A stretch of 64,000 bases of DNA from Diplonema japonicum (GCA_964019335.1 OZ025697.1:310001-374000); one strand, 5' to 3'. Shown: positions 8,575-43,167, numbered from the stretch's first letter. The notes: generated by a model not told the origin, from the letters alone. Program-made: numbers and translations.

Positions 8575-9123
8575 GGCTTTTTTTTTCTTTTTTTTTTTTC
8601 TTCTTTTTTTTTACCGTCCCCCCACCCCCGCCCCGCCTCCTTGTTTTAAGAAAATTACGAGTTGTAAGGGAAAAAAAAAATTTTTTTTTCAATGGGAAAA
8701 AGAAGAAAAAAAAAAAATGTTGGGGGAGAAATTGGATCATTTAGCATCTTTTGTAAGAAGGATATAAAAATATTTTTGATTCTACATGAAATGAGGGGGG
8801 GGTGGAATAATCGCTATCGATTGAAAAAAGAAAGTAAAGGGGGATGGAGGGATAAAGGGAGGGAGAGTGGGCCATGTGGCCTTTTTTTTTATATACTTTT
8901 TTATGACAGAAAAAAAAATGAGGGTTGCCTCAAGTTATAAAAAAGAAAATATTTTTATCGAGGTAGGCCACGAACTTTTTTTTTTCTTGTTCCTTTTTTT
9001 CCCCCCTCGTCATTTGAAGACTATCACGGGTTGCCTTTAAGAAAAAAAAATTGAAAATTCACAAAACATATGGGTGGGGGAAGAAAGAGGAAAAAAAAAA
9101 GAAGAAAAAAAAAAACCAGACAG

Positions 9124-9170
<47 letters not shown>

Positions 9171-9233
9171 GGCGAGGAAAAAAAAAAAAAAAAAAATCGA
9201 TAAATGTTTTTTTTTTCGGATCCCTCATTATCA

Positions 9234-9269
<36 letters not shown>

Positions 9270-9335
9270 CGTTTGGGAAATGCAAGAATGCAATCCTTCT
9301 TTTGGGAGTGGGAGATAACTAAGAACTTTCCTTCT

Positions 9336-12300
9336 TCAGTTCAAAGCACTGTAATCGGTCGGATCGAGACCCGCTTGTGAAGGGTAGCTGCAGGACTCAA
9401 CAGAAAAGTAGGTCACCGTGAACCGGTGGATACCGTTATTCTGCTTCTTAATGTCAGGCGACCAGATCTGGAAATCCACCACCACTGTAGAATGCGGCCA
9501 CTTCACCAAAACATCCATCTCCTCAAAACTGTCCCCTCTCCCTTCACCAATACTGTTCACACCCGTAAGGTAAGGGACATGTTTGACAAAAACAACGCGC
9601 TCCGCTTGGCGGGGGGGATCGGTAGAGGATTCAGGCGGTTTGTTAGAAGCAATCTTCACTTCAATACCAGTGTCTTGATGTTCAGAATTGTCGGCGATAA
9701 AAAACCCCGCTTTTATTCGAATATGCGAACCCCCTGAAAGCGAGAGAATAGGGCTCATTAACGCGGTTCCAAAGTGTCGGTACACCACAACTCTTGACGA
9801 CAGGAATTTGTAGTTTTTAATATCCCATCTTACTAGAAGTTCGTCTGTCGCAAAGTCCAAGAGATCTTCGAAGTGAGAAATCCTGCAGAGCTTCGTCGTA
9901 CTGTCTTCCTCAATATGTTTTTCGTCGCAAGTTTCACCGCGCCACCCATAAGCGCAAGTTCCACAGTCGTGGCCTGACCAATGCCCTGCACACTGGCACC
10001 CGGACACCCCACACTTTCCGTTACCATTACATACCACTGTTTTTAGGACGCCGCGTGGGGTTGTCTTTTGAACTGCTCCCGGACAGGTACCAGCGTCGTG
10101 AAGGTTTTTCACGGCGAACCCTACCAAACCCACGGTGTCTACCTGAACCCGGCCTTCGCTTGCTGATGCGTTGACAACGAGTCTTATCACTTTAGACCTG
10201 TGTAGCACTGTGTGCTTGCCGATGCTGCTTGGGTTCAAAGACACCTTCGACATCAGGTGTTTGACCGAGCCCCCCTTCAAGGTGTATATTCTGGACAATC
10301 CGCTTTTAAAGAAGACCGGGTTCTGACGTTCCCATATCAGCTCGAAGTCGTTTCGGTTGACGTTGATCTGCGGGAGGGGGGGAAACAACAATTTTTTTTT
10401 TTTTTTTAAAAACACTAAAGTTTTGTTTACCGATGAAGACCCCACAGAGGGCGACGTTGAGGCAATCACATCATTATAAGGTGTGCTGTTGCCACGGTTC
10501 CCGATGGTGTCCGTTGCTTGTGCGGTGAGCTGAGGGGGGGTTTTTTTTTTCTTTTTTTCTTTTTATACCTTTGCGGCTCTTCTTTGCACGGTCAGAACCC
10601 CTTTTGTCCCGTTTGAGAATATGACGGGTTTTCCTGCGGAACCTCCTATCCCGGCGTCGGCACCCCCCGCAGCGGGTTGCGCCCATATCTGCACCACAGA
10701 CCCCGGGAAGTGGTTCTCAAACACCCACACATCAGTGATGAATACGGGGTCTGCATACTCCAACTCGATGTATCTTATTAATTTTTTTTTTACCCCCTTT
10801 TTTTTTTCCAACACGCATACTGCAACGACTCGTTCCACACTGTGTTGACGCACGTCTTGACGGATGACTTTACATCGCACGCAACCTGAAGCGGCTCCCA
10901 TGCTCGGTTCCTGTTGCTGGCATGTTTCCTGTGTTCGATTTCTTTCAAGCGAAGCAGCATACCCGAAGTATGTGTCGACGGCATCGGGCAACCCCAGCAC
11001 AGTGTGCACATTGCCTGGCTCTGTCTGGGTGGAGTAGTCGTTGACCTTGATAGGGTATTGGATGGGTCGGGTCTCTGTGGAAAACTGTCGGTTGTTTTCA
11101 GGGACGGGGTCGCCTTCTTCTCTTGCCTCTGGAGGGCGGAGTGGGGTGTCGCTGCCCTTACACTCTGGACCCGACCACCCTGAAGCGCATCGCCCACAGC
11201 TGTTGCCGCTCCAGAATCCACTTTCGCTGCTGTAGTCACACAAGCATTCACCGTTTTCGCATGTTCCATGTGCTCCGCAGTCGCCTTTTCTGTCGGTTCC
11301 CACTTGCACATTGCCGCATGTCCTCGGGACTGTGCTGCCTTCAACACATGTCTGGCATGCAGGACACGACTGCAGTTCATCTGTGTTCACATCCACCCAG
11401 TCGCACACACCCATGTTAGTGCATGACCTGCATGACTCTGTGCACCTGTTGTGGTGTTGGTGGCTACTCTTTTTTTTATCGTTTTTATCGTCTCACATAC
11501 GCGGTGTTGCAGCACAGCCCTCCCACGCAGTGTCCAGAGGCGCATAGTTTATCACTGTCACAAGCAGCACCAAGTGCCCTTCGTGGTTCACACCTGTGTC
11601 GCATGCAGTGGTACCCCTCTACACAATCAGAAGCCACCTGGCACACCACACTGCAGGTCTTCTTGGTACATCGGTACGGGCTGTATTGATTGGCAAACAA
11701 AGAAGAAAGCATACCGGCAGGTCTCGTCGATGCTGCACGCCACCCCATTAATCGGGGCTGAGCTGGGGGGTGCCCACCAAGGCATGAGCCTAGCGATTTT
11801 GAAGCCGCCATTAACAGGGATGGAGACCTTCAAACACTTCGCAGGCACGTCACCGATGTAGCATCTCCTGTCAATGCTGTCTGGGTCCTGGTACCCTTGT
11901 AGGAGGATATCTCCCTGCACGCACTTGGCACTGGCACAGTAGTGCAGTGGGGCGCAATGCACGTCAAGGTAGCAGGATGTCCTGCACACAGCATTATCGA
12001 GGGGTGCGATGCTCAAGGCGACACCGCATGCATACGGCGTGCAGAAGTCAGCGTCGGCCAATGCACAGCTACCACTGCTTGTGGACGAGCCAAGGAGGCA
12101 CTCACCATTGACACAGTGGTGCGTTCTCGCGCAGTGCGTGTCCACAGAACACGATGTTCTGCACGCAGATCCCGAGAAGTGCTGCTGGGTATTGTTCTTC
12201 CCGCAGCAGTATCCATTGCAGCTGTCGTGTGAGAAACAAAGGTTAGGATCGGCAGACACCACGCATGTACCGGAACCCGTTGCACTGTTTTCCGTGAAGT

Positions 12301-15300
12301 CGCCTGTTGCTGTCGAGCATTGTGATGCGGGCATCGGAAGGTCAGCAGCGCCCGCCAGTCGCAAGTAAGCAGGGATCACATCTTCGGGTGCCTTTGTCCG
12401 GAACACGCACACAGCGTCGCCATTGCAATGGGCATCCGACCAGCACTCCGTGTAACACGTGTTTAGAGAAGTATCGCAGCCGTATGAACCGCATATCGAA
12501 GGATCGGCCCTGCAGCTGCCTGCGATAGGCACAGTTGCGCCGGCAGGCTCACACGCGCTCTCCACGCACGCATAACCATCGATGCAGTGCGCGTCGAGAG
12601 TACATGTGATTTTGCACAAGTCGCCTGCTACAGGTGATGTGTACCTGCCACTGCCGCATACATACGGGTCACAGTACCTTGGTCGTCCGTAGCAGCTCGG
12701 GTCAGTTTCGGCAGTACATCTGTACTGCTTGAGAGGAGCACACTCACAGTCGTCAACATCAGCCGTGAGGAGGGGGCTGCCACCACAAGACACTTCAACA
12801 AAGACGGGCGAAGGACAAGGTGCCGAGAAGTACGCCCCACCCGGCCCTTTGGGTGTGCCTGCAGGGCAGAAGGTGACCGGGCACTGCGTACCAGGTAAGC
12901 ATGTCGTAGAAATGCGGACGTCAGCAGGACACTTGCAGGCGCGTGTGGCACTGATCCTGTCTTTTCCAGGCACCCATGTCCCCTCAGAGGGTAAGGGTCT
13001 GCCTCTGCAGTCTATTTCAACATCAGAAAACGTCACCTCCGGTGCACACAGCTTGGGCTCCGTTCCCGGCTCGCAAACAGGTGCTGGAGGTGGTGGACAC
13101 CCACAGGGATGCTCGACTACTCTGTTCAGGACAGGTGGGAAAGTGTTCTTGCAGTCTATAGTCAGCTGATCATGCCACTTGGGGCAAGCGTCCGCCGCAC
13201 AAAACCCTTCTGACCCTTCTTTGCAGGTGAATACAGGAAGAGGGCACCCGCACGGATCCTTTCCTGTGGTGGAACAGGGGAGTTGTTCAAGCTCAGGTGC
13301 AGGCCAGCCTCCGCAGTCGACAACTAAGTTAGACCCGAGTATAGCGTTCCAGTCGGGGCAGATGGGGGTCCCGTCCAGCTCTGTAAGGCATTTGATCCTT
13401 TCAGTACCATCGACCTTTTTCGGGCTGCCGTCTGCTTTAGTTGTGTTGATGACAGTGTCGGGCTTGCACATCGGGATGGGGGGCGAGTTGCATCCGCAAA
13501 AGTCTTCCTTTGTCTTCAGCCTGTAGGCGTGGATGTCGTGAACCTTCTGCAGGCAATTAATTTCCAGGGGCTGGGCGATCTCTGTGGGGCACTCAAAACA
13601 CTTGCTAGAGCGAGTGTCTTCAGGTATGTCACAGACGTCAGCGGGACACGACAAGAACAGGTTATACATATGCTTCGTAACGTTGATGTGTGCACCCTGG
13701 AATGTGATGTTCGCCGCTAAGGCCTCCGACTCGCTGAGCCTTTCTCCCTTAGGGCACAGGGTTGACGCCATATTCAGGCACCACTTAGGCACAACCGCCT
13801 TCCCAGCTGTCCCTGCAACACAGGAAATAAGCGTGGGGTCTGCACCACAAACGTCAGGGTCGGGGCAGCTTATGTACTGTGACGGGTACCCTTGGCAGTC
13901 GTATTGCACAACGGTCTCCACCTTGCCTTCTACAACACAGCATTCTGTGCTGTTCCCTTCGTCCTTGCAGACAGGGGCTTTCGAAAGCGGGCACCTGTTA
14001 TGTTTCAATCAATTCATCCTGCAGCTTCAAACATACCCACAGATGTCCTTTGCAATGGAAGGAAGGTCAGGTGCACACATGAAAGTGCAGTCGACTTCCG
14101 GGGCGGGGTCCTGCGTGGGTTGTGCTTGGTAGGACAAGACATACTTCCGAGTTAAAATACTCATCGATCACCCACCTGCCGCCAGCAGCACATGTTTTGG
14201 GACACGCCAAGTTGGATGTACAGTCCAGTGCTGTAAAGGTAGTGGTGGAATTCGATGACAGTACTGACTGATACGTGATGTAGTGGGGGTAGAATGGAGG
14301 CGGCGCACACTGCATGCAAGTCTGGCCTGTGTAACCCGGAGCGCAGACGCACTGTTTGTACATGGGGGACAGGGGGTTCAGCTCGCAGTATCCAGAAGAC
14401 ACACCACGGTAGCATGGCAGCAACGAGTGACACCTTGCACCGTCGCACGTCTTGTCGCTGAGGCAAGCAGCGACAGAACAACTCCCCGAGGTCCACCCAT
14501 CAGCGCATTTATCACACACATCACCAACCCAGTTCCCTCGATCAGCAGGAAGCACCACAGGACCTACAAGCCCTGCCGTCGTAATGACAGTACTCACAAA
14601 GTTGTTTGCAGTGTAGATGCGACTGCTCTCGTACGCCTCCCACCCCAAGGGCAGCGATGCGGTCGCTTCAGTCCTCACCTTCCATCCCATGGCGGTCTGC
14701 AACCTGGCGTTCCCCCAGTTGTTCACACCGGAGATGTCCGTCGTCCCTGGCTGTGTCGTCATCTGCAGTGATAGAATAACGTTGCCTGACTCCTTGATCT
14801 TCAAGTCCCTCATGAAGCCCTCGTATAGCATCGAAGGGGTGCCCGATGAGATGTCAGCGCCGATGGTAAGACCCTCCCTCATGAACAGTAAGGATCGCAT
14901 TTTTGGCTTGCCGTGCATGCCTGCAGGTGAAGAGGAAGCCCTGGGGGTGAAGATGTCCTTCCCGCCGATCGTCTCTACAGTGCCGATCTTCACGTCACCG
15001 TTTGCAGCGTCTAGCTCTACTCCGAGCATCAGCCACCTACCTGTTAAGAAGTCACCAAATCCTGGCGCCACAGCCCTCAGCACAGCACCAGTCCCATCTT
15101 GGACAGTCACTGTAACAGTGCCGCTCTTTAGCTCCCCGTCGCCTTCCGAGTTCATGTCTACGTGAATATGCGAACCGTCTGTGTGCGCAGCCCTAAGGAC
15201 CGTCATGGGTCTGTACAGGGCGGTGCTCTTCAACAACACATTGAACGAGAGCGTTGATAGGGGCGGCACAGGGCGGTAGTGCACCAACAGGAACATCCCG

Positions 15301-18300
15301 TGCACCTGAGAAGTGATTGTTTTAGTCTTTTACATTATCGACAATACCTTTATGTCAGCTGTTGCAGGGGCGCCCGATGTCGGGGATAGATCAACAATAA
15401 CCTTCATGTTCTTGATCTGTTGTGTTTGTGTCATGTGTTTCGAATGTGATACCTTGGCGGTGCTCTCCTCTTCCACAGCGAAGAAAGTGGCGTCGATCAC
15501 CGGGGCGAGACTGCCAGGAGTCAAGGTAGTGGACGTCACTGTGCTTTCGGCCAATGCGGTACCCGCTTTGCGGATGGTTCTGCTGCCGTCGGGGAACTCC
15601 AGCATGACCTTCATGTCCATGTTCTGGAAGACGTCTGCGACGATCAAAACCTGCAGACCGATGACTTCGCCTGTCAAGGTTGGGAAGTGGTAATCGTTCC
15701 CGAAGGACATTGACAGCGTGATCCCATCGCCGTAAGTAGGCTGAGACGTGCTGCCACCCTTAGAAGAGCGCCACAGGTGAGGGGTGTAGTCTTTCCATGC
15801 CGACATTCCTGTGCAGCAGTCAGAGATCCTGTACGAGAGGACATCGGGCGGAGTCATGAAGGTGTTTGTCGTCCTTGGGATTTCTGTAGCGCTGGACCAC
15901 TCGGCGAACGCACCCACCTTGTCCACCACTGGGATGTTTGTCACAAATAGCCTGACAGAATCTGCCACACGGGCGGTCAACGCGCCATTCTCGCCCCATG
16001 TCCCTTCTCCGAACCACAACGGCCACGTTGCCCCCGAAGGATCCGACTCCGGACATGCACTGAACAGACCTATGAACTCGTTCAGCAGCGGGTCGTTCTT
16101 CGAATACACACAAACACGGTCGGACTGGTGCTTGTCAGTGCGTCCCATTACTGTCTTGATACTGACAGGAGTCTCTGGTTTTGCGAGTGCTTCTTTGATA
16201 GCCACCTGAAGCTCTACATGTAACACGGCGACCCATTGTGTGCCATCACCTGAAGAGATGATCACAATCGTGTCGCCGGTGGTGTCCAGTACAGGTGGTG
16301 GCTTCCAGAAACCTCCTCCGAAAGTGTTGCCGTCTGCCTCAGTAAGGTAGCACCAGCTAGGCCCTGTTGTGGGTGAGGGGTTTGCGGATGTTGTGGCGGC
16401 GAAGACGTCGACACCGGTAGCGAACATATGCATAGGGCGGAATGGCTCTACTTTGCCAGCAAGCTCATTGGCCTTCATGACAGCTTCACCAATATGGCCA
16501 TCGCCAGCCCATGCGCCGCCGACCACGGCAGCACCCACCGTCCTCCCAGTAGCACTGTCGACAAAGAACCTACAGTACCTCACAACGGTTGCTTGGCCGA
16601 ATGTCGAACACGTGCAGTGCCCTTTGGAGCACGTAAAACCCGGACATTCAGGCTGCAGGTAATACAACCCGTCGTGCGGCCTGCCTAAGTTAAGAAGCGT
16701 ACCGTCTGGGTTCAATTTGTAGCTCTCGACCACATGGTGGCATGATTTGTAAATGGAAGCTTGGTCGGGAGCACCTGGGAACCTGTTTGTAGTTCCGTCA
16801 GGCATCTTGCTTGAGATGGGATACCTCATAAAGTATGAGGTGTCGAAGCGCATTGCCGTTCGGATTCTTATAGACTGCACGCCTTGGTCTTGCCCGAAGC
16901 AGATGCATTTCCCGTCGCCTCTACAAATACCATGCCCAGAACACTCCTTTCCGTTAGGTCCGATGGCACATTTGCTGGTGGTGCACCTGGTGCCTTCGTA
17001 GCCTTCAGCACAGCGTTCGCAGTTGGGTCCAGACCAGTAGCCGTTGATGGCGTCTGTGTAGCATTCGCAAGGGGACGGGAGTTGTTGGCAGAAAGTGTCG
17101 CCGCAGAGAGAGATAAAGGTGGGGGAAGCTGTGTCGGAGACCTTCCCGCCGCAGCACGACGTGAGCGCGTGCTGCAGACAGTAGCGGTCGTACTCTTTCG
17201 TGCTCTCAATGTCGTTCGCGTCGTTGGTGCAGATCCCGTTGTAGTTGCAAGTGGATGCATCACACTTCGGGGCCTCTATGCACATTGGGATGCCAGTAGC
17301 ACATGGCGATTCGCATGTATCGCACGGAAGCACCCCATCCGGGCACACAGGGTCACCGTGCAGACAGGTGAGCGGTGGGCTCTTTACGCGGGTAGGCCCG
17401 CACACCACATCAGAAATAGGGGACCCGTCTTTTTTCAGCGCCGTTGTCGAGTACCTTGTGTGCACGTCATAATCTTCAGAAGGCTCCAATGATATCGAAT
17501 CAAAGGCCACTAGACAGTCCGTGCCGCTAGTGACAGCTGCCGTCGTCACTGCGTCGTACTTGATACACCGCAGCTTAATGACCGCATACAGGGTACCCAA
17601 GGGTGCCACGTGGGTCAGAACCATCTTCCCCCATGACGGGTACTGCTGTCTGTTTGTAGGTGAACCTGACACTGTCACCAAGTCCCTTCCGAACTCGTCA
17701 CGGAAGGACAGCTCGATGACACCAACATCTTCAGTGGGGACGCTGTGTGCCTGACTCATGTGCGTGATCTGTGCAATGAGGGTGTGTTCCTTGAGAGGGA
17801 TTAGCGTGGATGCTGTCTTAGACGTCACGTACATCATCTCGGCGGAGTGCCGACCGGAGCTCTGCCCTGTCGCGGTCACCTGTGAGTAGAAATACACATC
17901 TCCAGCAGCAGGGGCAATAGGACTCCCCTTGAAAGAGAGCCCACCGTAACGCGAAGCTGCTATCCAGTTCCCTGTGTATGCAGGTTGCGAGTTCCTTCCA
18001 TTGTCAGTTGCATCCCACCCCATTGCCCCGGGCACGCTCATGTCAACACCAAACGTGATCAACGGGACTGTCGGGTTAGATGCCGACAGTTGGCTTGCCA
18101 CCTCCTCACCGCCCCCGTTCAGCAAGCCTACAAAAGGCGCTTCATTGTACACAACACTGAAGCGTGCTAAGCTCAGAGGATTATTGGTATCTTTTTCGTC
18201 GACGTTCCCAAATGGGAAAGAGCTCGTCGGTGTGAAGTGATTGTGTTGCGAGCCGTTGACGCTCATGGTGGCGTAGTAGTTCCTGCAATTCCACACCTGC

Positions 18301-21300
18301 TGCAAGGTGGTCCCCACTTTTGCCACTTGAATAGGGAAGACGTCTGTGACCTGCGTGAATGCAGCGTCGCAGTCGACCAAGTTGAGCATCTCGTCCACCA
18401 AACCGACAGAGACCTCCCACGCGTTGCCTTTGATGGCGCTCTTTGCTTGTTCTGCGCACACGAGGGATGCAGGCCACCCAGGCCGCACGGGGATCTTCGC
18501 AGTAGAGCTACCCTTGAGACCAGGCACAGCACAGCCCACGGTGATCACATCAGGTGCCGTGGGGTACCAGATACTGTTTATCACCACTGAATAGTCCAGC
18601 CCTGTGAAGCCACACCCGTTAGCGGCATGTGCTGTCTGGTTGCATGACGAGGGCACTGCATATGTCGTCTTAAGAGCACCGAAGAAAGTTGCTTCTGGAG
18701 TGTCTTGGCTGACTTCAACCCCAGTGGAAGGCTCCAACGTGGACCCCACTGGCTGCACATCAAGGTCGCTGATAGTGTTGGTGAGAATCCCTTTCGGTTT
18801 GATCCTCACCTGCAAGAAAGTCGACTCCACGCCGCTCACGGCACCTGGCGGGTGCTGGCTCAGCTGCTCTGTCGGAAGCCTTGCACCAAATACTCTGATG
18901 TCGTAGACCAGTGCGCTGTCCACGCGCATCTCCAAGAACGGTGGCACGATAGGAGGACCTGTGAGGTCAGTCCACTCGGTCACAGTGTACGTGCTTTTTG
19001 ATACACCGTCCACGAAGATCTCCGCCACACCTACCTGGGAACCAGAGATGGGTTTGTTTGAGATGCCTTCAAATGTAGCAGCGTATGAATGCCACCCGTC
19101 CATCCAAGAGGGGTCCATCTCAACAGAAGCCACAGTGTGACCAGGCGGAACATCCAACTTCAAGAAGTGTGTTTGGAGAGGTTCTTTGCTGAATTCAACG
19201 TACCAAGAAAACTGCGAGTTGTGTAGAAGGATAGACCTTGTCTCTGCGTCAGGTCGCAGCGACAGGAACTTCGCCCACAGCTCTAAGGTGAAGGCGTTCT
19301 GGGAGACTCTTGGAAGTGACGCACCGGGAGCCAATCCCGTAAGGCACATACTTGCAGGCGGCGTGATAGTACTGGTACTACACCCATAAAGCGAACCACC
19401 TAGGATGGAGGCCGCTTTTACATCCCTGTTGGCAGAGCTGCTGGCAGCTTTATTGAGCTGTCCCTTCCCGTGTGTGAGGTGGAGGGAAACAGATATCCCT
19501 TCGGTCCATGTGTGCACACCATGCCCATACTTGTCTTTGATCTGGACACGGTAGGTTTCGAGGTTGGATGGCCCGGCAACGTGTTCCCCCGGGAAGCCAA
19601 GGAATTCACAGTGGTCGGCCTCCGCTGGTGTGAACAGGACAGCACTGGAGGTGATCGTAATGTCAGTACGACACTCCGCAGTGTCGCACTTGTCAATGTA
19701 GGAAACAACGGTAAACCTGAACTGCAGCAGCACTGGGTGGTTTACGTGCAGTCCCGTGAAGTGCGCTACACCATCCGATGAGATGGCTACAATGGTGCCG
19801 TCGATAGACCCGCTCAGCAGAGGGCTGTGAAGCTTCGTCCCCAAAACAGGCACAAGGTTGCTTTTGGTAGTTGCCAGCAACACAGCCCCGCTCCCGACCC
19901 CGACACCCGTCACTAGGGGGTCAATACGTACACCCACGCCATTGTGTCCCGTGTTTGCGTTCCCGTCTACGATCTTGATCTCCGCGAAGAAATGTTCGTT
20001 CACACGCATCTCGCTCAGTACAGGCGAGTCGATCACCAGTGACTGGGGACACCCCGGGCTCACCATAATAGGTGTGATCGGAGCAAGTCCTGCAACGAAG
20101 GTGTATGGGGTAGCCTCCTGTTTGAACACAATGCTCTTGACGGTAGTCGTCGTGAGCGGGAAGGACACATCGCAAAACGTGTCATCGTTACCTTGCGAAG
20201 AAGCACGCGTCCTGTCGATAGCATACTGGCACGAAACAGGCGTCCCACCATCCACGACCGAGACTACAGACACACCGTTCGCCTCTGAAGCTTCCAGCTT
20301 GCGGAAGCTTGCACTCAGGAGCCTCACGCGGAAAGAAAGAGTTGAATTTACTCTTATCGGGCATGTGATGCTAGGGTTTGTGAGCACTGTAATGCGCTTT
20401 GCCTCGATCACCACCACATCGACGGAGGTGCTTGTCATGCTCGGTGCCTGCGGGTCGTCTTCGCCGGCAGTGCTCAAGCGGCGGCACGTTACAGTCAACG
20501 TATGGGTTGCTACGTTCATGAAGGCGAAGTTGTGCCTGAACCAAACAGTGGAGGGCTCAGTGAGCACTTCATTGCCGTCATCATCGTTGCCATAGTGCAT
20601 GTGCAGCCTGGGAACAAGTCCCGCGTTGTCGTCGAGTCTTATGAGTTGCGGCGACTCGAGAGTACACAGCTGTGCGTACCTCAGAGTATCGATGGCAGGG
20701 TTGCCATACTTGTCGACCGATCGCACTTTTAGACCGACGTCCAAGGCTTGCCCTTGAAGAGCAGTCTCATCGTAGTGCACTGCGGTCAACGACGTAGGTT
20801 CATTGTGGATCACTTCCACTGTCTTACTGACGACCTGCACCTCCATGGTGCAGGCTGTTCTCGCTGTGATCGTGTGGGAGGGCACCACCCTTAAGGAAGG
20901 CGCCGCCTTCGTGGATGTCACAGTGAAAACGAAGGTGCTGGCGTCGTTCGAAACAAGCGATGAAACGTAATCCGCGCTATCGATCGTGACCGCGTAAGCC
21001 TCCAAGTTGTGCACAAAGTTAATCTTGTTGCGGTAACGGTCGAGCACCGTGACCGTGACGGTGAATGGCTTTCCAGCAATAACATTTATGGGGAGGTCGG
21101 AGACCTCGATGTATGCAGGTAAGCACGATAAAATGATGACGTCCAACTTCGGCGGGTAAGGGTCCATAGGGACAGCGATAAGCCAGTGAGGTGCGATAGC
21201 CTCGAGAGAAATTGTTTCGGCACTGGTAAAACTCAGTCCTGAAAATGTTCTTCTTCCGGATTGAAGTACGCCAGTCAGCTGCTGTGTTTGAATGGATCCA

Positions 21301-27300: not shown

Positions 27301-30300
27301 AGTGCATTGCCATACTCGTCCAAAGCAGCGACAACTACCGGAACAAGGAAGTACTTATTGACCTCTTCTTCAGTAGGACATTTGGGTTGTTTGACAAATC
27401 GCAGACTGCTGAAGGTACCCGACGAGATGATGATCGGTTCGCAGATGGCGCTAACCCCGTGCAGAGCAGGCAGCCCAGACACAGAGGCACCTAAGACGAT
27501 GGTCTGCGCGACAATGTAATCAAGTGTATCGAAACGTGCCGTGCCCTCCACGACAGGTGCGTTTGCTGACAACGTGCCGCCGCCTGACTCAAGTGTAACG
27601 GTCGCAATGGACTCCGCAGTCCTGTATGCAATGTTCCCAAGAATGTCGGTGACCGCGACGGTCAAGCCGAATGGGCTGCCTGCCTTTGCAGATGTGGTGT
27701 CCAGCTCGCAAGTCAGTTTATCAGCATCGAGAGCATGAACAGATACATGACACGAACCCTTCAGCATCTTGTCATGCAGCAAGGTTTGGCATTTGATAAT
27801 GTACTCGCCCGTCTTTTCCAATATTAGGGCATCGTGTGTCGGTAGCACGGCAGAGCCCTCTTCCCACGACTCGCGAATGATCTGACCTTCGACCTCGCAG
27901 ATTATGCCACCCTCCGAGGCAGTGGCATGGTTCCCGTACTGATCAAGGAGGCTGGCCGCGAAGGAAATACTAGACCCGGCAGGCGCTGCTTTCGGAGGAC
28001 ACATCAGCTCCATGCTGACAGCAGGAGCAGACACGACATGTATGCCGGGACAATCAATGGGCACAGGGTCGTTGTTTGTAGCTCTTGCAAGCCAAGCCTC
28101 CGACGTCAGCGATGGGTCACGTGTTGTGACTTGCAACGTCACGAAGCCGCTACGTGTGAACTTTGCTTTGAATGTGAGGTACCCATTCTGATCAGTCACA
28201 GCTGCATATGACGATGTGAAAGTGTTTGCCTCAGTAACCCATGCATCGTCGATCTTTGGGAGGGGCGTACCATAGGCTATACGCAGATACGCTTTGAACT
28301 GACCACAGCTCGCGTGTCCTGGGCACGCGGGCTTATAGGCACCATTCTCCCACATTTCAATAGCAGCGGAAATTGTGAATTCTGAACCTGCCGTCACCTC
28401 GGTAGGGGCTACTAGACATGTCATGGCAAGCGAGCCGCTGACGACAATGCCCTGCTCGCCTTGGCATTCCGCAGTGATACCAGAGCTACCCTCAAGGATC
28501 ACCCTCAGTGCATTGGAGGCAGGCCTTTCAGCATCATAACTGACCTCTGCAAAGGAAACGATACCGTTCCTGTCGGGCTTGAGACCTGCCGCTGCGTCGT
28601 TCAAGTGGCCTTGACCACCAATGTAGCCTCCTGTGTTGGAGGCTTCTTTAATGGCAACACGGCAATCATCACAATCCGTAATGGGGTTCCCAAACCTGTC
28701 GAACAGCTGTCCGTGGAAAGCTCCCATTGAGCGCTTAAGGGTGGCCCTTGTGGTTTCTGTCTTGCATTCGATACGCGACCAGCTGCTGTGGTCGACGCAG
28801 ATAGTCGGTGATACCGCTTGCGTCAGACCCTGGCCCACTGCTACGATGTCAAAACACTCAGCTTTCTCGTGCGAGAGGCCGCAGAAGGTCGCTGCGCCCT
28901 CCGTCGTAAACAGCTCAGTCGTACCTTGCAAGTCTGTGCAGTTCTTGTCGCATTCTCGAGACTTCCAGTTGATCCCCAACGCTAAATGGAACCCCTTCGT
29001 TGTCAGCGTCCGTCTAGGACGGGTGCCCGCAACTGTGGAATGGTGTGTACCCTCGTGCTTTTCGTCGACACCGGACTCAATCCTTGCGTTCCTTGAGAGG
29101 ACACCGGTAATAAATTTCGAAGTTCTCTCGTCGCCGTTGTACTGTCCCATCAAGGCCCCTGTGACAGAGGCGGGGTAGGGTTCTGCAAGTGGCCGCAACT
29201 CGTTGAAGATGGATCCCGACTGCTGGGTCTGATACCCGTCGCCGGAGCCCCACAACGCAGCTGCCTTAGGGTTGGATGGGTCTACTTTGTTCCCTTCACT
29301 GTCACGTACCTCAACAGAAACACAGAACTCATCGCCCACCTTTAGTGGCGAGCCTTTTTCATCTGGAGAGTTTCCAACTGGCACTGAAGGTGTCGTGATT
29401 GCCAGACAGCAAGCATCACCAGGGAGGACCTCCACCTCCGGTGCTGACGAGGCTGGGATATCAAGACCTTTCACAGCTACCGTGACAACGATGAAATCAG
29501 GAGCAAGGCCGTAGGATAAGGAGTCGAAGGAAGCAAGGCCACCAGAAATGACAGATGTCGTGTCTCCCCTGAGTTTGCTTTTGCCCTTGGTCAAGGTGAG
29601 CATCACCGTGTAGCCGTCTGATGACATGCTGATGAGGTTTCCGTACCGATCCAAGACAGCAGCGACCACTCTGAAGGGGAGTCCGGCCTTTATCACTCGC
29701 TGCCCGTGAACTCTTCCCGTGACCTCGGGGCGGATGCTCGCTGGCGTACCTGACACGACAAATATAGGACCGCACAGCGCTTGTGCAAGCGGCTTCAGCC
29801 CAGTTGCGATCGGGTAGTCAGACGGGAGCTCCTCACCCAGCTCCTTGACCTTCTTGTTGCTCGTAACAGTCACAGTTGTGTCCTCAATGATATTCGGCAC
29901 CGGGAACACGATGCTATCAGATACAAGGCCTTTCGATCTTGCTACCAATATGTACCCATGCTCCTCCGCCTTTGTGATGACAAGTCCTTCAAAACGGACA
30001 GACGTCTCACCAGGGCTGGGCACAGCAGCGGGTGGGGATGACTCCCATGCGGCAATGCAAGGGAGCCCTTTCGTTTTGGGGCATGCATGAAGCGTTATGG
30101 GGTTGGTCCATCCTGAGGCGGAATAGCCGTTTTTGTCCTGCACCTCGACAACCTTGGAGAACTCAACGCCGACACCGATGACGAAGGGGATTGTCTTGCA
30201 GTCCTTGTCAACAAAGGAAAGGGCTGCGGGGGGGCCGCTCATGATGTTCAGCTCAACGATCTCGCTGGACACATTCATGGCACCGGTGTCGTCGACGGAG

Positions 30301-33300
30301 AAGCGGAACCTATACTGCCCTGGGGCTACCAGCCGCACATTAAACGTTACGTTTCCCCTCACTTCATCGTAGTTCATAGTGGTGACGCCCTCCTGTGGGG
30401 GGACCACCTGCTGCATCACAACACGTGAAGTAGAGTTGAAAGGGCAGCCACCATTCCTGCACCACACACCGCGTTCCTGAATGCCCACTGTGAACGACAC
30501 ACTGCCGCCAGACGCAGCAATGAGCGGATACCCTGCGACACCCACATTATACTTTCGGATGTAGACCGTGGTGCTGTGCTTCACGATAGGGTCGTACTGC
30601 AGGCTATGGAGGTCGAGGGCTTGCGTGAGTCGTTCTGAGTGTGACGCAGGGCACCCAAGGATGGAGTCCCAGCTGCGTTGCAGCGAGACGCGAAGGTAGG
30701 TTGCAGTGTCGTTAACGGGGTTGATCTCTGTTGGTGTGTACACAAGGTTAGACTCTACGTACTCCCCATGAACAAAGGCACGGTGCCCAGATTGCGAGAC
30801 AGTTCCCTCAGTGCTACACTCATCGTTCGCGCATAAGGTAATATCCACTTTCTCGTCTGACCATTTCGCAAGGTTCCCATACACATCCAGAGCTTGCACT
30901 GTCACAGGTGGGAACGGCTTCCCGATACCAACGTTTGTGGGCGTGTGCACCATCAGTCTGCTGACTGGACCTGCATGGAAGCACACTAGGTTGGTTGTGG
31001 AAGAGGAGAGGAGACCGGTTGCTACTGCAATTAGTGACAAGCACTCAGCCTTCCGGTACGCGAACGAGTACTCCAGAATAGCCTCGTCCTTGAAATGTGG
31101 TAAAATGCCTATTTCACTGATAGAAGCCGACGAGCCTTTTACCACCTTGATGTCCATCACGCTGGAGCCCTGGCTGCGAGCGTTCTTCGTACAATCCACC
31201 TCGACTTCTGCGAAGTCACATGTGTACACGTTGTTCTTCTCACCGCAAACCTGCTCTTTCCGTAGCTGGGGCACGCACTCCATGTTCCTCTCAGGTGTCC
31301 CTGCGGCCTTCTCGGAGTGGAGCTGCTTGACATCAGCAGTGTTCCCACCCTTGTCCAGCACACCTATGATCAGGGTCATTTTTTGACCCACAGCTGCCTC
31401 TCTGCAAATACTTTGCTCGTTGTTTGATAAACCGCTACAGGCAGACACGTACTCAGGTGCCATGTGCGCCATGCACGGCTGCTTGTTGATCACCAGCTTG
31501 TAAGGCGCCCCAGCATAGATGGTGAACGGCGTGCACGATACAGGAAGAGGGTCGACGGGTACAGATGACACTTGGTACACAGATAGCCACCTCTGGCCGT
31601 TGTTCTGTTTTCCGCACATTGTGTGCTCCGTTCCGGAGCAACGTGAACACGCCTTTGAATTCGCGTTGTAGTAGTAGCCCGCTTTGCACATACAGAAACC
31701 TGCTTCTCCACACTCCATATTGTGGGTGCAGCCTTTCTTGCAAGGTACATTTGTCATCTTCTCACCGCACGACGTTTTGGAGCAAGGATTCTCACAGAAC
31801 AGCTCCTTTACTGGCCCGTACCTAGGTTTGAAAGGTGTATCGCTGCACCAGCACGTAGTAGTTTGTGCACCCGACACTGTGGATCCAAGTGCAAAAATGG
31901 GCTTCCCATGGCTGATGCATTTTTGAAGGCACCAATCGGGTGTCAAGTCAGCGCTGTCTACACCAACTGTTTCGCTGTGAAGGTCGAAGGTCGCTTTGTG
32001 TGCATCGGAGCAACCTTCACACACAGGGACATCCAGGTAGCAGCCCAACTTCTTGTAGTGAGTTGATACTTTGGCACTGCTAATCTGGACTTCAAGGTTT
32101 CCAGCCTTTGTGTGCACGAGACCCTTCCATGACGCCACACCCCCTTCACCGATGGTCGCCGTGAGGGCACCAACAAGAGCACCACTGTGAGACTTCATGC
32201 TGATCTCAAGGGGAAACCCAGTCGCTGGAACCTTGTTGCCATACTCGTCGTGGATCCATGCAGACACGAGGAGCTTCTCCATCGCGATGGCTGAGTTCAG
32301 CGCGTGATTGCATGTGATGCCAGAAGCGATGCTGGGTACCACTTTGGTGGATGCTATAGTGACTCCCGGTGTGGTGCAGAGAGGACATGTGGGACATGAC
32401 ACACAAGTATCACACGTAACGGTTATCCTCGTCTGCCCGGCCTTCAGCAGCTTCGCCTTCAGCGTTGCGAGGCCGTTGCTTGTAGTGGCTGAGATGACGG
32501 GCGTTGTAGAGAAGGTTGAGTCCACCCAAGGATCGATCTTGGCATGGCGTATCTGAACCGTTGCCTTACAGTGTGCAGGGAACCTATTCGTAGGAGCGCT
32601 GCTTGCCATGGTCACGACATAAAGGGCGATCTCTTCGCCTGCTTGAGTGACAGGCGGCAGAGGACTGGGGATTGCAATGCTTGACGGAAGGGATGTAATT
32701 ACCCGTACCAACCTAGTCGTGCTGGCGATAGGGGAAGTTCCTGTAGCTGAAACTACGAAAAGCAGCGATAGGCAAGCTCCATTGTAGCCAGTGGGCCAGT
32801 CGAGCGACACTGCAAGAGGGCTGCCAGTGAGAGTAACTGCAGGGAACACTTCCACTCCAGAGACGCTGCTGCTTCCCCATACAGCGACAAGCTTCGGTTC
32901 TGAGCGACACATTTCATAGACTTCAACACGTGCTGCGATGGACGTAGGGAGGCTCGAGGACACTTCCACTGTAGATGCAGAGATCGTGATTTCATTGAAC
33001 GTGCTTATAATAGGACTGCCGTGAAGGATGCTGTTTTCCAACAGTTCTGCGCTGCCATCGTCTTGTATCGATTTGAATATTGCCAAAGACAGCTTCTGGC
33101 ACGTCGTCCTGATTTTGCAAGACCCTGTGAGGCCAGCACTCTTAGCCACCAGCGCGATCTCCTGAGAATCGCACTCACCGGGGTACCCAATCCCACTATG
33201 TTGGAAGGTGATTCCAGAGAAAGCTGAAACACCGCAACTCGACTGTTCCGAGACCTCGGATGAACTTTTGCATGAAAAGGAACCTGTACCGCTCTGCTTG

Positions 33301-36300
33301 AGGGCAAACACGACACCGCTCTTTTCCCATTCAGAGCTCGTCCCCAAGCCAGTTACCCTAATCACATAGGTGGCACCCTTCGTAACAGCGAGCGATACTT
33401 TTGCTGTCTTGCCATGGGAGCACCCGATGATCTTGCCTGAAGGGGCAGGGGTGAGGAAGTCTTTTAAGGAGACACCATCTAGGCCTGAAAAGGGGCCCAT
33501 CATGTGAAGAGCGAACTCCGGCGCGACAAATCTTGGATCAGAGCCCACTTCCACCACAACGTTTCCGCTGGTCATGGCAACAACGGTGAAGTAGTTGTCC
33601 ATGTCGAAGGTGCTGAACTGACCGTCGCCCTTGTAGCACACGCTGCCAGGGTTCTCTGTCTTCATTTTGCTCGTAAAAAGTACGGAGTTACCGCCACTCA
33701 AGCAGATGGGACGCAGGTCGGAGCCTTCCAACTGCGAGAAGGACAACGCATTATTCGCAGGAAACATGCTGGGTGCATTCATTGACGCACAGCAACACCC
33801 TGGCTTGTTCTCTTCGTACCTCACATCGCAAGCGCATGTACCAATAGAGCGTGCCAGTGGCGTGGAAAACAGACAGCCCGCCTTCTCGCAGTCTGCTTGA
33901 CTTGCACTGTAACTCTTGCACACGGTGTCGTCCGATGACCGAGACGACACGAGCGCAACACCTTGTGCTGTGATGCCGAGGCTCACCACCTGGTCATCAG
34001 CACACACGTTGTTCCCGAAGTTGTCAACGACGCTGAACAGCACCTCCATGTTCTGCGAGTACATGGTGCTGGGTGGGCACGTTCCTACCAAGGCGGTAGG
34101 CTTCCCTGCTTTGATATTCAGTTTCATGACGCCAGCGGTCAAGGGCGAAGACAACGCCCTCAACTGGGCAGTGCCTGTGTGAGTAGGGAGGGTCACTGTC
34201 ATGGTGCACTGGTTGATTTTGTATGATCTGCATGTGCCCACGATCATGGGCGGCGCACCCTCACTGTCAAGAATGACGTCGATCTGCTCCGACCATATCG
34301 AGAAGGCACCGCCGTCGTCCACTGCGTTGACGGTGAATGTGATAGTTTCGCCTGCTTCGAAGCTTCCACCGACGGTGCTGCCCACGCACAGAACGAGTTT
34401 CTTGGGTGGAAGGGTTTCGAAGTCCAGTGTCAAGGGAGCTGTACCAGTCCCTGAGCTTGTCACTGCCGCGTACACCTCTACCTTCGACCTGAGGTAGGAG
34501 CCGCATACGTTGTTCGTGTTGTATGTTAGCACTACCTGCGTGAAGGACGCGATGCCGTCAGCACCCACTGAGGCAGGAAGCGCGCTCAGTGTAGCATCCC
34601 CTGAAGCAGTCAGTACAGCCTCGCTCTCCGCAGCGTACCCACACCAAAAGGGGAGGAACGTGTCGCACGCCATTGCTTGGTACGGGTATGACGCGCTGGC
34701 ATTGAAAGCAATACACTTTCCATCATTGGAAGGGCCGTGGTCTTTCAAACCTGCGCAGCATGGCATTTTGCTGTTCCATTTCGCATTGAAGTGCACAGGC
34801 GAGACCCCGCTGTCCCACTCCACAACCGGCTGGTCCGGCCTGAAATCAGTCACTTGAAGGCCCACCCAGGCTACTCCTCCTGAGCGCTGAATGAGGTCCT
34901 CCATAGCGTCGTCTTCAACAGACATCAGACTACCTCCCCTGGCCCTGCAGATCGCTGAGGCAGTATCGCGGTTTTCTAAAGCAGGTACGTGTTCTGTGCA
35001 TATGCCATGCACGACGCTCCTACTGCTGCTGTCAAGCAACCATGGGCATGATGTTAGGTATTTCTCCTCAAGGCGTGCAGCGTTCAGCCAGTCGTCCATT
35101 ACCTGTGCTGTCAGACTGAACGGCTTCCCGTTCGTAACCGTCTGCTGTTCAGGCTTTTCTACAAAGCTAAACCTCGTTGGTTCACCCACGCTGACGGTGA
35201 TGCTCTGCTTCAGTACGTTGGAGCCCTTCGCCGACCAGATGAGCACCGTAAGTGCAGGCGACTCAGCGCGTGTGTGCTTAATGATGAATGCAGCATAGCC
35301 ATCAACAGTGTGCACGGCATAGGTCTGCTTGCAAGTACCAGAGTCCAGAGCTTCGTCGTTGCCTTCCTCAGCGTAACCGCTAGGGGGCGGTGCGTAGTGG
35401 GTGTGTTTGGTGAAAACGTCGCAAAAGGAAGGCTTGACACTGAGACATGAAGTCATGGCGTTGTAGCGACAAGCAGTAGCATCTGTGCAGATTCCTGTGC
35501 AGTCTCCTGAGCAAGCAGTGCAGGAGGCGTTGTTGGAGCAGTGCGTAAAACAGCTGTCAAGAGTGTTGAAGGTTGCTTGGATCTCGCCTGTGCATGTGCT
35601 GCCCTCCCGTCTTCTGTAGATGCCACTTGAGGCTTCGAATGCTGAGACATCACCAGAAGTGACGCACATCATGACAGGGACGCGCCCTGCGTAGAGGTCC
35701 CCATCGTCGGTTGTCACCTTTACGAAGAGATTTGTCTTCTGACCAGCATCCACTCTGAGAGGCTCCTTTTGTGTGCCATGCGGGGATGCCCAGTGCAGGA
35801 CAGGTGATTTCATTACTACTTTATCAGCGCAGGTAGTCAGTGGGTCAGGGCACTGCACGTTGCCCTGCAGTGTCCCCCCTCCTGTGAAGTAGCCCCAAGG
35901 CACTGGGATGGGCGTATCACCAGGGCCTATCAGCTTCCCCACATCGTCAACACTACAAGTCCGCACCCTGTTCCCAATGGTGATCTGGACGTCCCAAGAG
36001 AGTCCGGTAAAATCCTCGACGCACTGGTAAGGCAAGCAGTGCCCGGACTGTGTGGTCTTTGACCCTTTCATGTGTAGGTCACCAACGAAACAAGCGGAAG
36101 CCTCTGAGGCAATTGAGAACGGGTCACATTGGGCAGCATCACAGTTTTGTTTTAATGGGTTGAGACCGCCGTCCATCTTGCACGACTCTTGCGCATCCGC
36201 TGCACTCCACACCATGCAGTAGTCCATCACAGGGTCTGCACCGTAAGTCATCTGCGCCTCAGATTCGGACTGGAATAAAGGCCTCGTGCTGTCATAGGCG

Positions 36301-37664
36301 GACTTGAGGAGGTACTGAGGGGGGATAGAAGTCTCGAAAGTGTTGGCGTTACAAGAAGCTATGTAGCTGCGGTCAGGAGAGCAACGTTTACAGCCCGAGC
36401 CTCGGAGACATCCAAAGAGGTACTCCTCGTAGCACCCGTAAGTTCCGGAACCTGGCGACTGATGCCACTCCATGCATGACTTCTGGACGAAATCGCACCC
36501 AGCATGCCGCCCATAAGACAAGTACTCTGCGTGGTCGTAGTTTGCAAGGTAGTAACCAGTGTCCATGAGGGCTGCAAGGGTGAAGGCGCTGAGCCTTGCG
36601 TTCTTCTCGACAACGCTGTTCATTATCTCGCCTTTGAGAATCCTCTTCTCCCAGTGGATGCTAATCGTTGTGCTTTTCGAACGGCCGAATGTCCAATCTT
36701 CGAGTTCCACGCCAGGTAGCTCCCAAGCCCCGAAAAGAGGGCAGCTGAAGTGCTGCCTTGCGACATTCATGACGTGAGGGGTGGTTTGCATGGTGAGGCT
36801 GTTCTTGATGGTGTTGTTGACCTCAGGGAAGAAGGACGGAGAGGAGGATTGAGTGGGACGCTCGAAGGATTGGAAGACGCGTTCTACAGAGCGAGGCGTG
36901 AAAGAGGTGTAGTCGGCCGTCCATTGTTTGTAGAACGTGGTCGAGCCTGATGGCCGTGCGAGCGACGGGGTGATCCCGATGGCGTGTATGAGTTCGTGAA
37001 GGATGACCGTTGCTGTGTAAGGAACAGACACCACGTCTTCCAGCACCATAGAGGGGTTGATGTTGACGTGACCGATCACAGGACGGTGCGTGTTCGGAGC
37101 GAAGTTGCAAGGGTACCCAAAGCCGAGTTCCTCGGAGTCTGCTTGCATCGGCGTTGCAGTCACGAACAGTACAAAGTCTGTCACGATCCCGATAGTGTTG
37201 AGCTTGGTGTCCGTTAATGTGTAAGGACTCTTACACCCAACCTTTACAGGAGAGAGGACAGAGATAGTGTCTTCTTGTGATGTCACTTGAAGCACCGTCA
37301 GCATGGGTGTGATTCGCCTCACGGCACGCGACACTGCTTCTTGAAGCCGCAGCTTTTTTGTGTGAGTCAGAACGTCCTCATCCGTACACCGTTGGTTCCC
37401 TCCGTTCAAGGTGCTGACCTCTGCTCCTTGTGCGTTGCATGTGTATGCTGCGTCTTCTATTTTGTAGATCACGTGGATCCTCATAGGGGTTTGTATGCTC
37501 GTGTCGGGTGGTACAATGCTGCCGTGTGTGCCCAGTACCCTTGCCTCCACCTCCTCCGCGGTCCACCATAACCCGCTCTCCACGCCGTGCGTGCTTTGAT
37601 GCAGAACATCAGAGCTCACGCTTCCCGCAGCCGCAACGAGGGCCAGCCACAGTACGGCCCTCAT
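9336..37664 (-). CDS. Giant secreted leishmanolysin (peptidase M8)-headed multidomain adhesin/lectin protein, ~9,312 aa, 10 exons
   Basis: Start MRAVLWLALVAAAGSVSS (signal peptide) at 37664. Introns: 15347->15306 (42), 14144->14111 (34), 14036->13995 (42), 11714->11681 (34), 11500->11446 (55), 10962->10929 (34), 10820->10774 (47), 10568->10530 (39), 10430->10368 (63). All are GT..AG. 28329-390=27939 nt = 9313 codons including the stop. Each junction continues a recognisable motif. Confidence 0.88.
18890..19330 (-). other. LamG/ConA-like domain (a second one lies at ~14750-15260)
   Basis: FTLELWAKF...DGWHSYAATFEG...IFVDG...VYDIRVFGARL. Confidence 0.75.
22800..23070 (-). other. WSC carbohydrate-binding domain (a second, interrupted one lies at ~31570-32050)
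   Basis: VGCF...LTPQKCADACVAEGYDLIGLRGGKVCLCG...ECAMRCLG...EYCGG. Confidence 0.85.
25520..26580 (-). other. Kelch beta-propeller of the giant protein
   Basis: Repeated GG motifs: LVFGG, PRYGHAATTVDDKMLIFGG, KLFVFGG..PQNDLWVLD, MYVLGG, IVTFGG, YFFGG. Confidence 0.88.
34630..35050 (-). other. C-type lectin-like domain of the giant protein
   Basis: CPW...ASAICRARGGSLMSVED...AWVGL...WDSG...W...P...CIAF...ACDTFLPFWC. Confidence 0.8.
35800..37480 (-). other. Peptidase M8 (leishmanolysin/invadolysin-like) domain of the giant protein
   Basis: DFVLFVTA, HRPVIGHVNINP, HELIHAIG (HExxH at 36984-36998), GVELED, IHWEKR (third Zn ligand), EIM Met-turn, LSAFTLAALMDTGYY, GRHAGCDFV, DPVMDYC. Confidence 0.92.
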
Positions 37665-37952
37665 ATGGCCGCGTGTCCCGTAATTTTCTTTTCTTGTAAC
37701 CACTTTTTCTTTTACCCCTGTTTTTATATGATCTCTCTTTTTTCTTACCCTTTTGTGGGCTTTCGAATTAACAAGAAAAAACAAAAAAAATAAATATTGC
37801 GACCGTGTCAGGAACAAAGCAGAAGGAGGGGGATAGTGGTAAGTAATGTGATGATATGAGTTAAAGGGAGGTCTTTGTGAGACACCCTCCCGTTCTAACA
37901 AGAAAAAAAGAGAGAAAAATGCTGTAAAGCAAATCGAAAGCAGGTCCTAGTT

Positions 37953-41657: not shown

Positions 41658-41816
41658 CACATATGAACCTCCTCTAAACAACATTGAAACAACATGTTAT
41701 AAAACAACAACAAAAAAAAAAAAAAAAAAAAAAAGCAAAAAAGAAACAATGTGTACAATACAAAGGAATTCTGAATTATTTCTTCTATTCTTTTTTTTTT
41801 TTTTTTTTTTTTTTTT

Positions 41817-43136: not shown

Positions 43137-43167
<31 letters not shown>

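Follow-up and report, generated by a model that had tools for sequence, protein, structure and literature searches.

Does the minus strand of Diplonema japonicum contig OZ025697.1 (GCA_964019335.1) carry, between positions 37664 and 9336 of the 64,000-nucleotide (nt) stretch 310001-374000 analysed here (the window), several large genes or a single gene of extreme length? A minus-strand open reading frame (ORF) of 7,523 codons (37901..15330), whose first ATG lies at 37664 and is followed by MRAVLWLALVAAAGSVSS, ends at a lone TAA (15332-15330), directly beyond which the frame is open again. The genome paper for D. japonicum YPF1604 describes an assembly of 62.30 Mb with no gene annotation, which is deferred to a later pipeline (PMC13598402). 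The evidence below answers the question in favour of one gene: window positions 37664-9336 (minus strand) constitute a ten-exon gene for a modular protein of 9,312 amino acids (aa; 996 kDa) that is predicted to be secreted.

The TAA sits within a 42-nt phase-0 segment, GTATTG...CTCAG (15347-15306), and eight further segments of 34-63 nt, which start with GTATG or GTAA and end with AG, restore one frame downstream. When the nine introns are removed the ten exons sum to 27,936 nt, or 9,312 aa in one open frame that holds no in-frame stop and in which all five split codons are sense codons; the product has a summed mass of 995.6 kDa and contains 391 Cys. Length and frame were derived by per-exon bookkeeping, and searches and structure predictions were run exon by exon. 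Two sources bear on the introns, namely run X1, a set of short RNA-like contigs that are ~96% identical to the window and hence come from a close relative other than this strain, and long ORFs of relatives (designated P0001 onwards). The elements of the gene model are:

37611..37664, minus strand: start codon and signal peptide (aa 1-18, MRAVLWLALVAAAGSVSS); first ATG of the frame, signal peptide judged by eye
15306..15347, minus strand: intron 1, 42 nt, GTATTG...CTCAG, phase 0, contains the TAA; sequence and comparison
14145..15305, minus strand: exon 2, 387 aa; 42% identity to P0002
14111..14144, minus strand: intron 2, 34 nt, GTATGT...CGCAG; skipped in an X1 RNA-like contig
13995..14036, minus strand: intron 3, 42 nt; skipped in an X1 contig, P0011 and P0006 collinear
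11715..13994, minus strand: exon 4, cysteine-rich, 759 aa, 10.7% Cys; sequence and relatives
11681..11714, minus strand: intron 4, 34 nt; skipped in an X1 contig (one substituted base), P0011 3719/3721
11446..11500, minus strand: intron 5, 55 nt, A-rich, GTATGT...ACAG; P0011 and P0006 collinear
10929..10962, minus strand: intron 6, 34 nt; needed for the frame, P0006 and P0010 gapless across it
10774..10820, minus strand: intron 7, 47 nt, A-rich; skipped in X1 record 1, ends CT..AC on the plus strand, P0011 3983/3985
10530..10568, minus strand: intron 8, 39 nt, A-rich; length offset in X1 record 1
10368..10430, minus strand: intron 9, 63 nt; length offset in X1 record 1, as for intron 8
9339..10367, minus strand: exon 10, terminal module, 343 aa, followed by a TGA stop at 9338-9336; relatives and structure prediction

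Six of the nine introns (2, 3, 4, 7, 8 and 9) are absent from the X1 contigs, with introns 2, 3, 4 and 7 missing exactly at the predicted GT..AG borders. Between 10367 and 10571 the genome spans 203 nt, but a 1,468-nt X1 contig (record 1) only 101 nt, which correspond to exon 9 plus 2 nt and are exactly what the loss of introns 8 and 9 (39+63 nt) would leave. Thirty of the 38 listed differences between the last exon and X1 fall at third codon positions, a bias that points to purifying selection. DNA contigs of X3, probably the source of the window, and of X7 from another study are identical to the window through the TAA, so the stop is not an assembly error. The X7 DNA contigs also rise ~tenfold in depth at 10651-10850, over the A-rich intron 7 and its flanks, and several of them end there with loose T-rich ends, suggesting a low-complexity repeat common to many loci.

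Relatives provide the second line of evidence. A search with the N-terminal M8 (leishmanolysin) head, limited to proteins of comparable length, returned three giants from other assemblies, P0001 (7,319 aa), P0002 (7,962 aa) and P0003 (7,231 aa), which have heads 42-44% identical to this one and the same Pfam set. All three begin at the same methionine with hydrophobic N-termini, and are collinear with exon 1 over ~7,400 residues at 33-37% identity. The single ORF of P0002 runs on into a 389-residue match to exon 2 (aa 7574-7962, 42% identity, E 8e-100) and is gapless across the exon 1/exon 2 junction (ADIK/VHGMFLLVHYR against GDIT/IEAIMLLVHYR). Exon 2 alone as a query gave no match within its length band, its homologues being located inside longer ORFs. 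Searching the full library with exon 10 identified long single ORFs in which every part of the model's 3' third occurs in the right order (P0011, 4,486 aa; P0006, 4,744 aa; P0005, 6,827 aa; P0012; P0010). Junctions 1-7 are collinear to the residue with the uninterrupted ORFs P0011, P0006, P0005, P0010 and P0002, and each split-codon junction leaves exactly one subject residue for the split codon, as seen in the positions for P0011 and P0006:

exon 1/exon 2 junction: P0011 2491/2492; P0006 not resolved
exon 3/exon 4 junction: P0011 2950/2952; P0006 3230/3232
exon 4/exon 5 junction: P0011 3719/3721; P0006 4012/4014
exon 5/exon 6 junction: P0011 3786/3788; P0006 4083/4085
exon 6/exon 7 junction: P0011 not resolved; P0006 4253/about 4255
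exon 7/exon 8 junction: P0011 3983/3985; P0006 4289/4291

P0011, P0006 and P0005 have none of these introns. Within the window's own genome (G000, 62.5 Mb in 132 contigs), three loci (C60, C10 and C2) combine an M8-like head and an exon-2 homologue in single frames of 10,627, 10,884 and 10,830 aa, respectively, with an exon-10 homologue 4-5 kb further on in the same strand. The initial annotation had joined the frames through nine 34-63 nt GT-AG introns into a product of 9,312 aa; the per-exon recount gave the same length, and the model is upheld by the introns missing from X1 and by the collinearity of junctions 1-7.

The introns conform in size, GTATG donors and A-rich tails to the style published for D. 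japonicum, in which 98% are GT-AG, the median length is 41 nt, the donor is (G)/GTATG and the 3' tract is unusually A-rich (PMC12621601). The euglenozoan host proposed in the initial annotation is likewise supported. All nine are confined to the last 6 kb of the gene, while the 22.3-kb exon 1 is devoid of intron-like sequence; a scan of exon 1 found no hidden in-frame introns and zero AT-rich windows. Matches to GTATGGCAAC in exon 1 were considered as introns and rejected, as they encode the D-Y-G-N motif of the protein. A minimal-intron dynamic search proposed long 'introns' that were biologically wrong, and the intron set was derived instead from consensus, RNA and comparison with relatives. 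Reading through the TAA stop codon was also rejected, because the relatives align gaplessly without the 14 extra residues. A practical consequence is that ORF-based or prokaryote-style gene calling truncates such genes at a 42-nt in-frame intron.

What kind of protein does the gene encode? After the signal peptide the chain opens with a metallopeptidase domain:

35979..37490, minus strand: Peptidase M8 (leishmanolysin) domain, aa 59-562; Pfam PF01457 and alignment with 1LML
36984..36998, minus strand: HELIH zinc-binding and catalytic motif, aa 223-227; opposite HEMAH of 1LML
36618..36662, minus strand: third zinc-ligand His (SIHWEKR, aa 335-341) and Met-turn (GEIMN, aa 345-349); alignment with 1LML

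The PF01457 match has an E of 5e-47 and a score of 161 bits, where the cutoff is 21, and spans profile positions 64-485 of 529; 1LML is matched at E 2e-15. Opposite 'SHIKMR...DELM' of 1LML stand the His of SIHWEKR and the Met of GEIM and, since HELIH, the third His and the Met-turn are all aligned, the active site is complete, with every catalytic residue present. The signal peptide and intact M8 head reported initially were thus both recovered, the former by eye.

The head is followed by a very long stalk, into which several other domains are inserted:

18111..35261, minus strand: stalk of ~27 diverged ~110-130-aa immunoglobulin (Ig)-like repeats, aa 802-6518, with a D-x-(Y/F)-G-N core; iterated hidden Markov model (HMM)
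34710..34970, minus strand: C-type-lectin-like insert, aa 899-985, below threshold; Pfam Lectin_C E 0.0016, 19.6 bits against 22.6
25713..26405, minus strand: Kelch beta-propeller, aa ~3754-3984; Pfam Kelch families, E 2e-22 and 1.7e-18
24525..24644, minus strand: PAN/apple-like insert in an Ig-like repeat, aa ~4341-4380; PAN_3, PAN_1 and PAN_4, E 7e-4 to 4e-3
22830..23057, minus strand: WSC carbohydrate-binding domain, aa 4870-4945; Pfam PF01822

A self-BLAST of the whole protein found no repeats and windowed BLAST weak ones only. The iterated HMM converges on 26-28 copies in each of four giants, with 27 in this protein, in keeping with the earlier suggestion of a protease mounted on a very long scaffold. 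The repeat alignment (A1) has the pattern '...V.aG.P..L....f.v.V.v.D.yGN.v....v.l....G.L.g......G.a.F..l.y.kA', and its profile matches the Ig-like domains of the Geobacillus surface-layer (S-layer) protein SbsC at E 7e-6. Single repeats gave sub-threshold matches to Big_1, Invasin_D3, Big_3_5 and Ig_7 (Big_1, 16.8 bits against a cutoff of 34.9; Invasin_D3, E 0.0097). The AlphaFold2 (AF2) model of one repeat is all-beta with six strands and is weak (predicted local distance difference test, pLDDT, 70); Foldseek and VIA searches with it returned no significant fold match. By sequence profile only, the repeats are putative bacterial-type Ig-like (BIg) domains. Among the inserts the Kelch blades score above threshold (PF24681, 79.8 bits, cutoff 50; PF24981, 67.4 bits, cutoff 50; Kelch_4, 46.8 bits), and the propeller occupies a collinear place in P0001, P0002 and P0003. 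The PAN match falls on one A1 repeat, in which the insert is visible in the alignment. PF01822 matches the WSC domain at E 8.8e-11 (42.3 bits against a cutoff of 27.8) over profile positions 3-82 of 82.

From the stalk end to the C-terminus the order is a conserved region, a putative LamG/epidermal growth factor (EGF)-like module, ~1,000 aa of Cys-rich EGF-like sequence and a terminal module with a jelly-roll as its last part. The first of these is:

15348..18110, minus strand: conserved region before intron 1, aa 6519-7439; collinear with P0001, P0002, P0003 and P0011

This region (aa 6519-7439) has no match in Pfam, the PDB or the ESM Atlas. Exon 2 would comprise a LamG/concanavalin A (ConA)-like part and EGF-like cysteine modules with weak Pfam EGF matches; its nearest ESM Atlas clusters are Laminin_G+EGF at 0.88, a value based on language-model features that serves as a lead only, and the LamG/ConA-like part has no Pfam or PDB match. 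Exons 3-6 contain 9-19% Cys and give weak EGF matches; exon 4, which has no match in Pfam or the PDB, is 37-40% identical over its full length to P0011, P0005 and P0006. Exons 8 and 9 consist of conserved or linker sequence.

Exon 10 has only 31 relatives among 1.84 billion representatives, and in the long proteins among them it forms the extreme C-terminus. Those relatives that have N-termini and Pfam matches (P0021, P0023 and P0024) carry M8-like heads. The terminal module is lineage-restricted; its beta-rich first part is followed by an EGF-like one and then by a jelly-roll of ~170 aa. In the AF2 model, built from a 14-sequence alignment, aa 160-330 of the exon form a beta-jelly-roll at pLDDT 70-89. 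The closest VIA match is to the carbohydrate-binding module (CBM) CBM22 (Z 10.4, 144 aligned residues), with 41 chains at Z >=8, many of them other CBMs, and reelin subrepeats at Z 9.1-9.8. Foldseek gave 107 matches at E <=0.001, including the Eph ligand-binding domain (E 5e-6) and meprin MAM domains. The jelly-roll has no Pfam match that would place it in a particular CBM or MAM sequence family, and its identity to the structural matches is 5-13%. The model is consistent with a binding-type fold that resembles CBMs, MAM domains and the Eph ligand-binding domain.

Is proteolysis the purpose of the family as a whole? The genome contains at least six related loci, most without the full set of zinc ligands. 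Its M8-headed giants number four, of 9,300 to ~11,000 aa, and there are shorter members in addition:

G000:C60:221936-255029: paralogue, ~33-34 kb from head to terminal module, dead head
G000:C10:763504-797414: paralogue, ~33-34 kb from head to terminal module, dead head
G000:C2:3595-37269: paralogue, ~33-34 kb from head to terminal module, dead head
C63:132574-134385: shorter member, intact HELFH head
C51:199283-207682: shorter member, degenerate head, terminal-module homologue
C64:320323-328682: shorter member, degenerate head, terminal-module homologue

The C60, C10 and C2 loci are larger than the gene in the window, and the ORFs of the three shorter members are 2,207-3,276 aa. HExxH, the third His and the Met are kept in this protein, in P0001, P0002 and P0003 and in the C63 paralogue (2,207-aa ORF). 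In the C60, C10 and C2 heads HELVQ and a Phe at the position of the third His mean that two of the three zinc ligands are lost, and C51, C64, P0021, P0023 and P0024 likewise have degenerate heads. M8 proteins of ordinary size share just 24-27% identity with this head, compared with 42-44% for the heads of the other giants. The family is therefore an M8 branch that is deep and restricted to one lineage, and many of its heads are pseudo-proteases. As the zinc ligands are lost in most relatives, proteolysis is not the common denominator of the family; its shared function is probably binding or scaffolding, proteolysis being an extra kept in this member.

Where would the protein act? The case for secretion comprises the N-terminal signal sequence, the lack of any other hydrophobic segment and the 391 Cys. 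A hydropathy scan detected no transmembrane segment and no hydrophobic or glycosylphosphatidylinositol (GPI)-type C-terminal tail in any exon, which predicts a product that is either secreted or retained by non-covalent contacts. The initial annotation had suggested a possible part in prey capture, surface digestion, extrusomes or the feeding apparatus, roles that stay conjectural. The sequence does not establish a surface protease, no anchor having been found by the scan. A secreted or matrix protein would be as likely as a surface protease.

We consider it moderately probable that the gene encodes one secreted ~1-MDa modular protein acting as a glycan- or ligand-binding filament that carries a protease. 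The protein would be exported through the endoplasmic reticulum (ER) to form an extended extracellular filament, hundreds of nanometres long, whose lectin-type modules and terminal jelly-roll may bind glycans or other ligands. Candidate targets are the organism's own glycocalyx, hair coat or mucilage, or prey and particles, and the live zinc protease would be held at a distance from, or concentrated on, the bound substrate. D. japonicum has a hair coat and glycocalyx on its feeding apparatus and flagella, and tubular extrusomes, and in its sessile stage a mucilaginous envelope attaches the cells and is left behind on release (PMC5845003).

The proposed arrangement would be functionally analogous to giant BIg adhesins with ligand-binding ends, and to the combination of protease and MAM domain in meprin. 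Like GP63/leishmanolysin (1LML) and invadolysin, the protein has an M8 domain with HExxH, a distant third His and a Met-turn, preceded by an N-terminal signal peptide. GP63, however, is a GPI-anchored protein of ~600 aa, whereas here M8 constitutes 5% of a 9,312-aa chain in which no anchor was found. With BIg adhesins and invasin/intimin it shares a long stalk of tandem, putatively Ig-like domains whose core is of the D-x-G-N type, as well as modules for binding ligands or sugars in the direction of one end. For comparison at the megadalton scale, two accounts give 595 kDa for Salmonella SiiE and 1.5 MDa for Marinomonas MpIBP (PMC6272769, PMC5550230). In contrast to these adhesins the protein is eukaryotic and predicted to be ER-secreted, its repeats are highly diverged (~15% column identity) instead of near-identical, and Pfam Big_1 is matched only below threshold. 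It also has a protease head and EGF-rich regions, carries Kelch, WSC and PAN domains as inserts, and contains no elements of a type I secretion system or outer-membrane anchor. Meprin alpha/beta (astacin, MAM, TRAF and EGF) is likewise a secreted zinc metzincin with a MAM-type jelly-roll and EGF, and its MAM domain matches the terminal jelly-roll (Foldseek E 2.6e-5, VIA Z 8.4). The likeness is one of fold and architectural logic only, as meprin has an M12 and not an M8 protease, is ~700 aa long and has no Ig stalk. The reelin repeat (jelly-roll, EGF, jelly-roll) resembles the beta part, EGF-like part and jelly-roll of the terminal module, but its Z values tie with those of many CBMs, the first beta part is of low confidence and the sequences are not similar; the resemblance does not establish homology. 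Chlamydomonas FUS1 is a eukaryotic protein with bacterial-type (invasin-like) Ig repeats; its profile match (E 0.76) is weak and not significant, and FUS1 is a ~800-aa membrane protein of gamete adhesion without a protease.

Several points weigh against the protease-bearing filament or temper individual parts of it. Protease activity, secretion, location, ligand and filament shape are all predicted or conjectural. The signal peptide was judged by eye and the anchor search was a simple hydropathy scan. The Ig-like fold of the stalk derives from a profile match at E 7e-6, with a poor AF2 model that has no significant structural match, and jelly-roll matches at Z ~10 indicate a common fold and not a ligand. 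The dead-head paralogues demonstrate that the scaffold can do without proteolysis. With respect to the gene model, no RNA contig of the relative covers 15051-15450 (the 15347/15306 junction), intron 5 or intron 6, and the support for the 15347/15306 junction is comparative only.

The alternative that survives best also assumes one gene, encoding a membrane- or wall-anchored adhesin whose M8 head is mainly a binding module, a role that GP63 also has, with proteolysis secondary or used for self-processing or shedding. It accords with the conservation of heads that lack zinc ligands in most of the family (C60, C10, C2, C51, C64, P0021, P0023 and P0024), with the resemblance of the stalk to the Ig domains of invasin, intimin and S-layer proteins and with the hair coat on the feeding apparatus (PMC5845003). 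The retention of all catalytic residues in this protein and in P0001, P0002 and P0003, its three closest relatives, over ~35% overall divergence argues instead for selection on catalysis, and the hydropathy scan found no transmembrane or GPI signal; we regard this explanation as rather unlikely. Decidedly unlikely, in our judgement, is a structural role in the matrix or mucilage of the sessile stage that starvation induces, in which the protein would cross-link envelope glycans while its protease frees the swimming cell. The secreted, cysteine-rich, multi-lectin composition would suit such a role, and both D. japonicum and D. aggregatum are described as having a mucilaginous envelope that stays behind empty when the cell is released (PMC5845003), but stage-wise expression and any tie of the gene to the envelope are conjecture. 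Both the binding-only adhesin and the envelope matrix are compatible with the data. The reading of the locus as two or more genes, with the 7,523-codon ORF ending at the TAA (15332-15330) and the downstream ORFs being independent genes of a polycistron, is not, and the open-frame, RNA and comparative evidence make it extremely improbable: the gap in RNA coverage at 15051-15450 and the called proteins P0001 (7,319 aa) and P0003 (7,231 aa), which stop near the equivalent point, would fit it, but the two frames are in phase and only 42 nt apart across a GT...AG segment, true spacers between genes here measure at least ~290 nt and contain long poly-T tracts, P0011 and P0002 run gaplessly through the equivalent point, C60, C10 and C2 hold both sides in one ORF, and exon 2 itself lacks both a start context and a signal peptide.

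If the protease-bearing filament is correct, what might the family contribute to the cell? Diplonemids are among the most abundant and diverse marine heterotrophic eukaryotes, and their feeding and attachment are almost unknown. The giants are specific candidate components of the hair coat, the mucilage or the surface that meets prey, and they offer a natural comparison of live and dead proteases inside one genome. A speculative and unlikely extension is that the M8-headed giants make up the filaments of the hair coat or mucilage that diplonemids carry on their feeding apparatus and flagella. With their Ig-like domains of bacterial type they would then be the eukaryotic equivalent of the megadalton BIg adhesins of bacteria; they would be anchored through the jelly-roll, and prey or surfaces would meet a live protease in the case of this gene and a dead binding head in that of the paralogues. 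Were this true, the family would be a main molecular interface between one of the most abundant groups of heterotrophic protists in the ocean and its food. Literature searches on giant M8 proteins and on M8 in diplonemids returned nothing relevant. M8 proteases, giant BIg adhesins and protease-MAM combinations are each known, while their fusion in a 9,312-aa eukaryotic secreted protein, and the family to which it belongs, appear to be undescribed. The initial view that the architecture is unlike any described protein holds to the extent that no describing paper was found in the searched literature; the protein is not a one-off, however, given P0001, P0002 and P0003 and at least six relatives in the genome.

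The window is gene-dense on the minus strand. Immediately upstream of the giant gene, 37953-41684 (minus strand) is a separate gene, whose 1,243-aa product includes the catalytic domain of an adenylate/guanylate cyclase (Pfam E 2.8e-13), and the spacer of ~290 nt between the two contains polypyrimidine tracts. The downstream spacer, 8900-9330 (minus strand), has several very long T runs on the coding strand, of up to ~60 nt; long T runs are typical of trans-splicing and polyadenylation spacers in this genome. Several other large minus-strand ORFs (289-3225, 41820-43325 and 50139-52943) have no Pfam match. A 509-aa ORF at 44371-45897 (minus strand) contains a TPD sequence-motif domain (PF14811, E 1e-10), and a tRNA gene at 61791-61862 (minus strand, 61 bits) is the sole Rfam match in the window.

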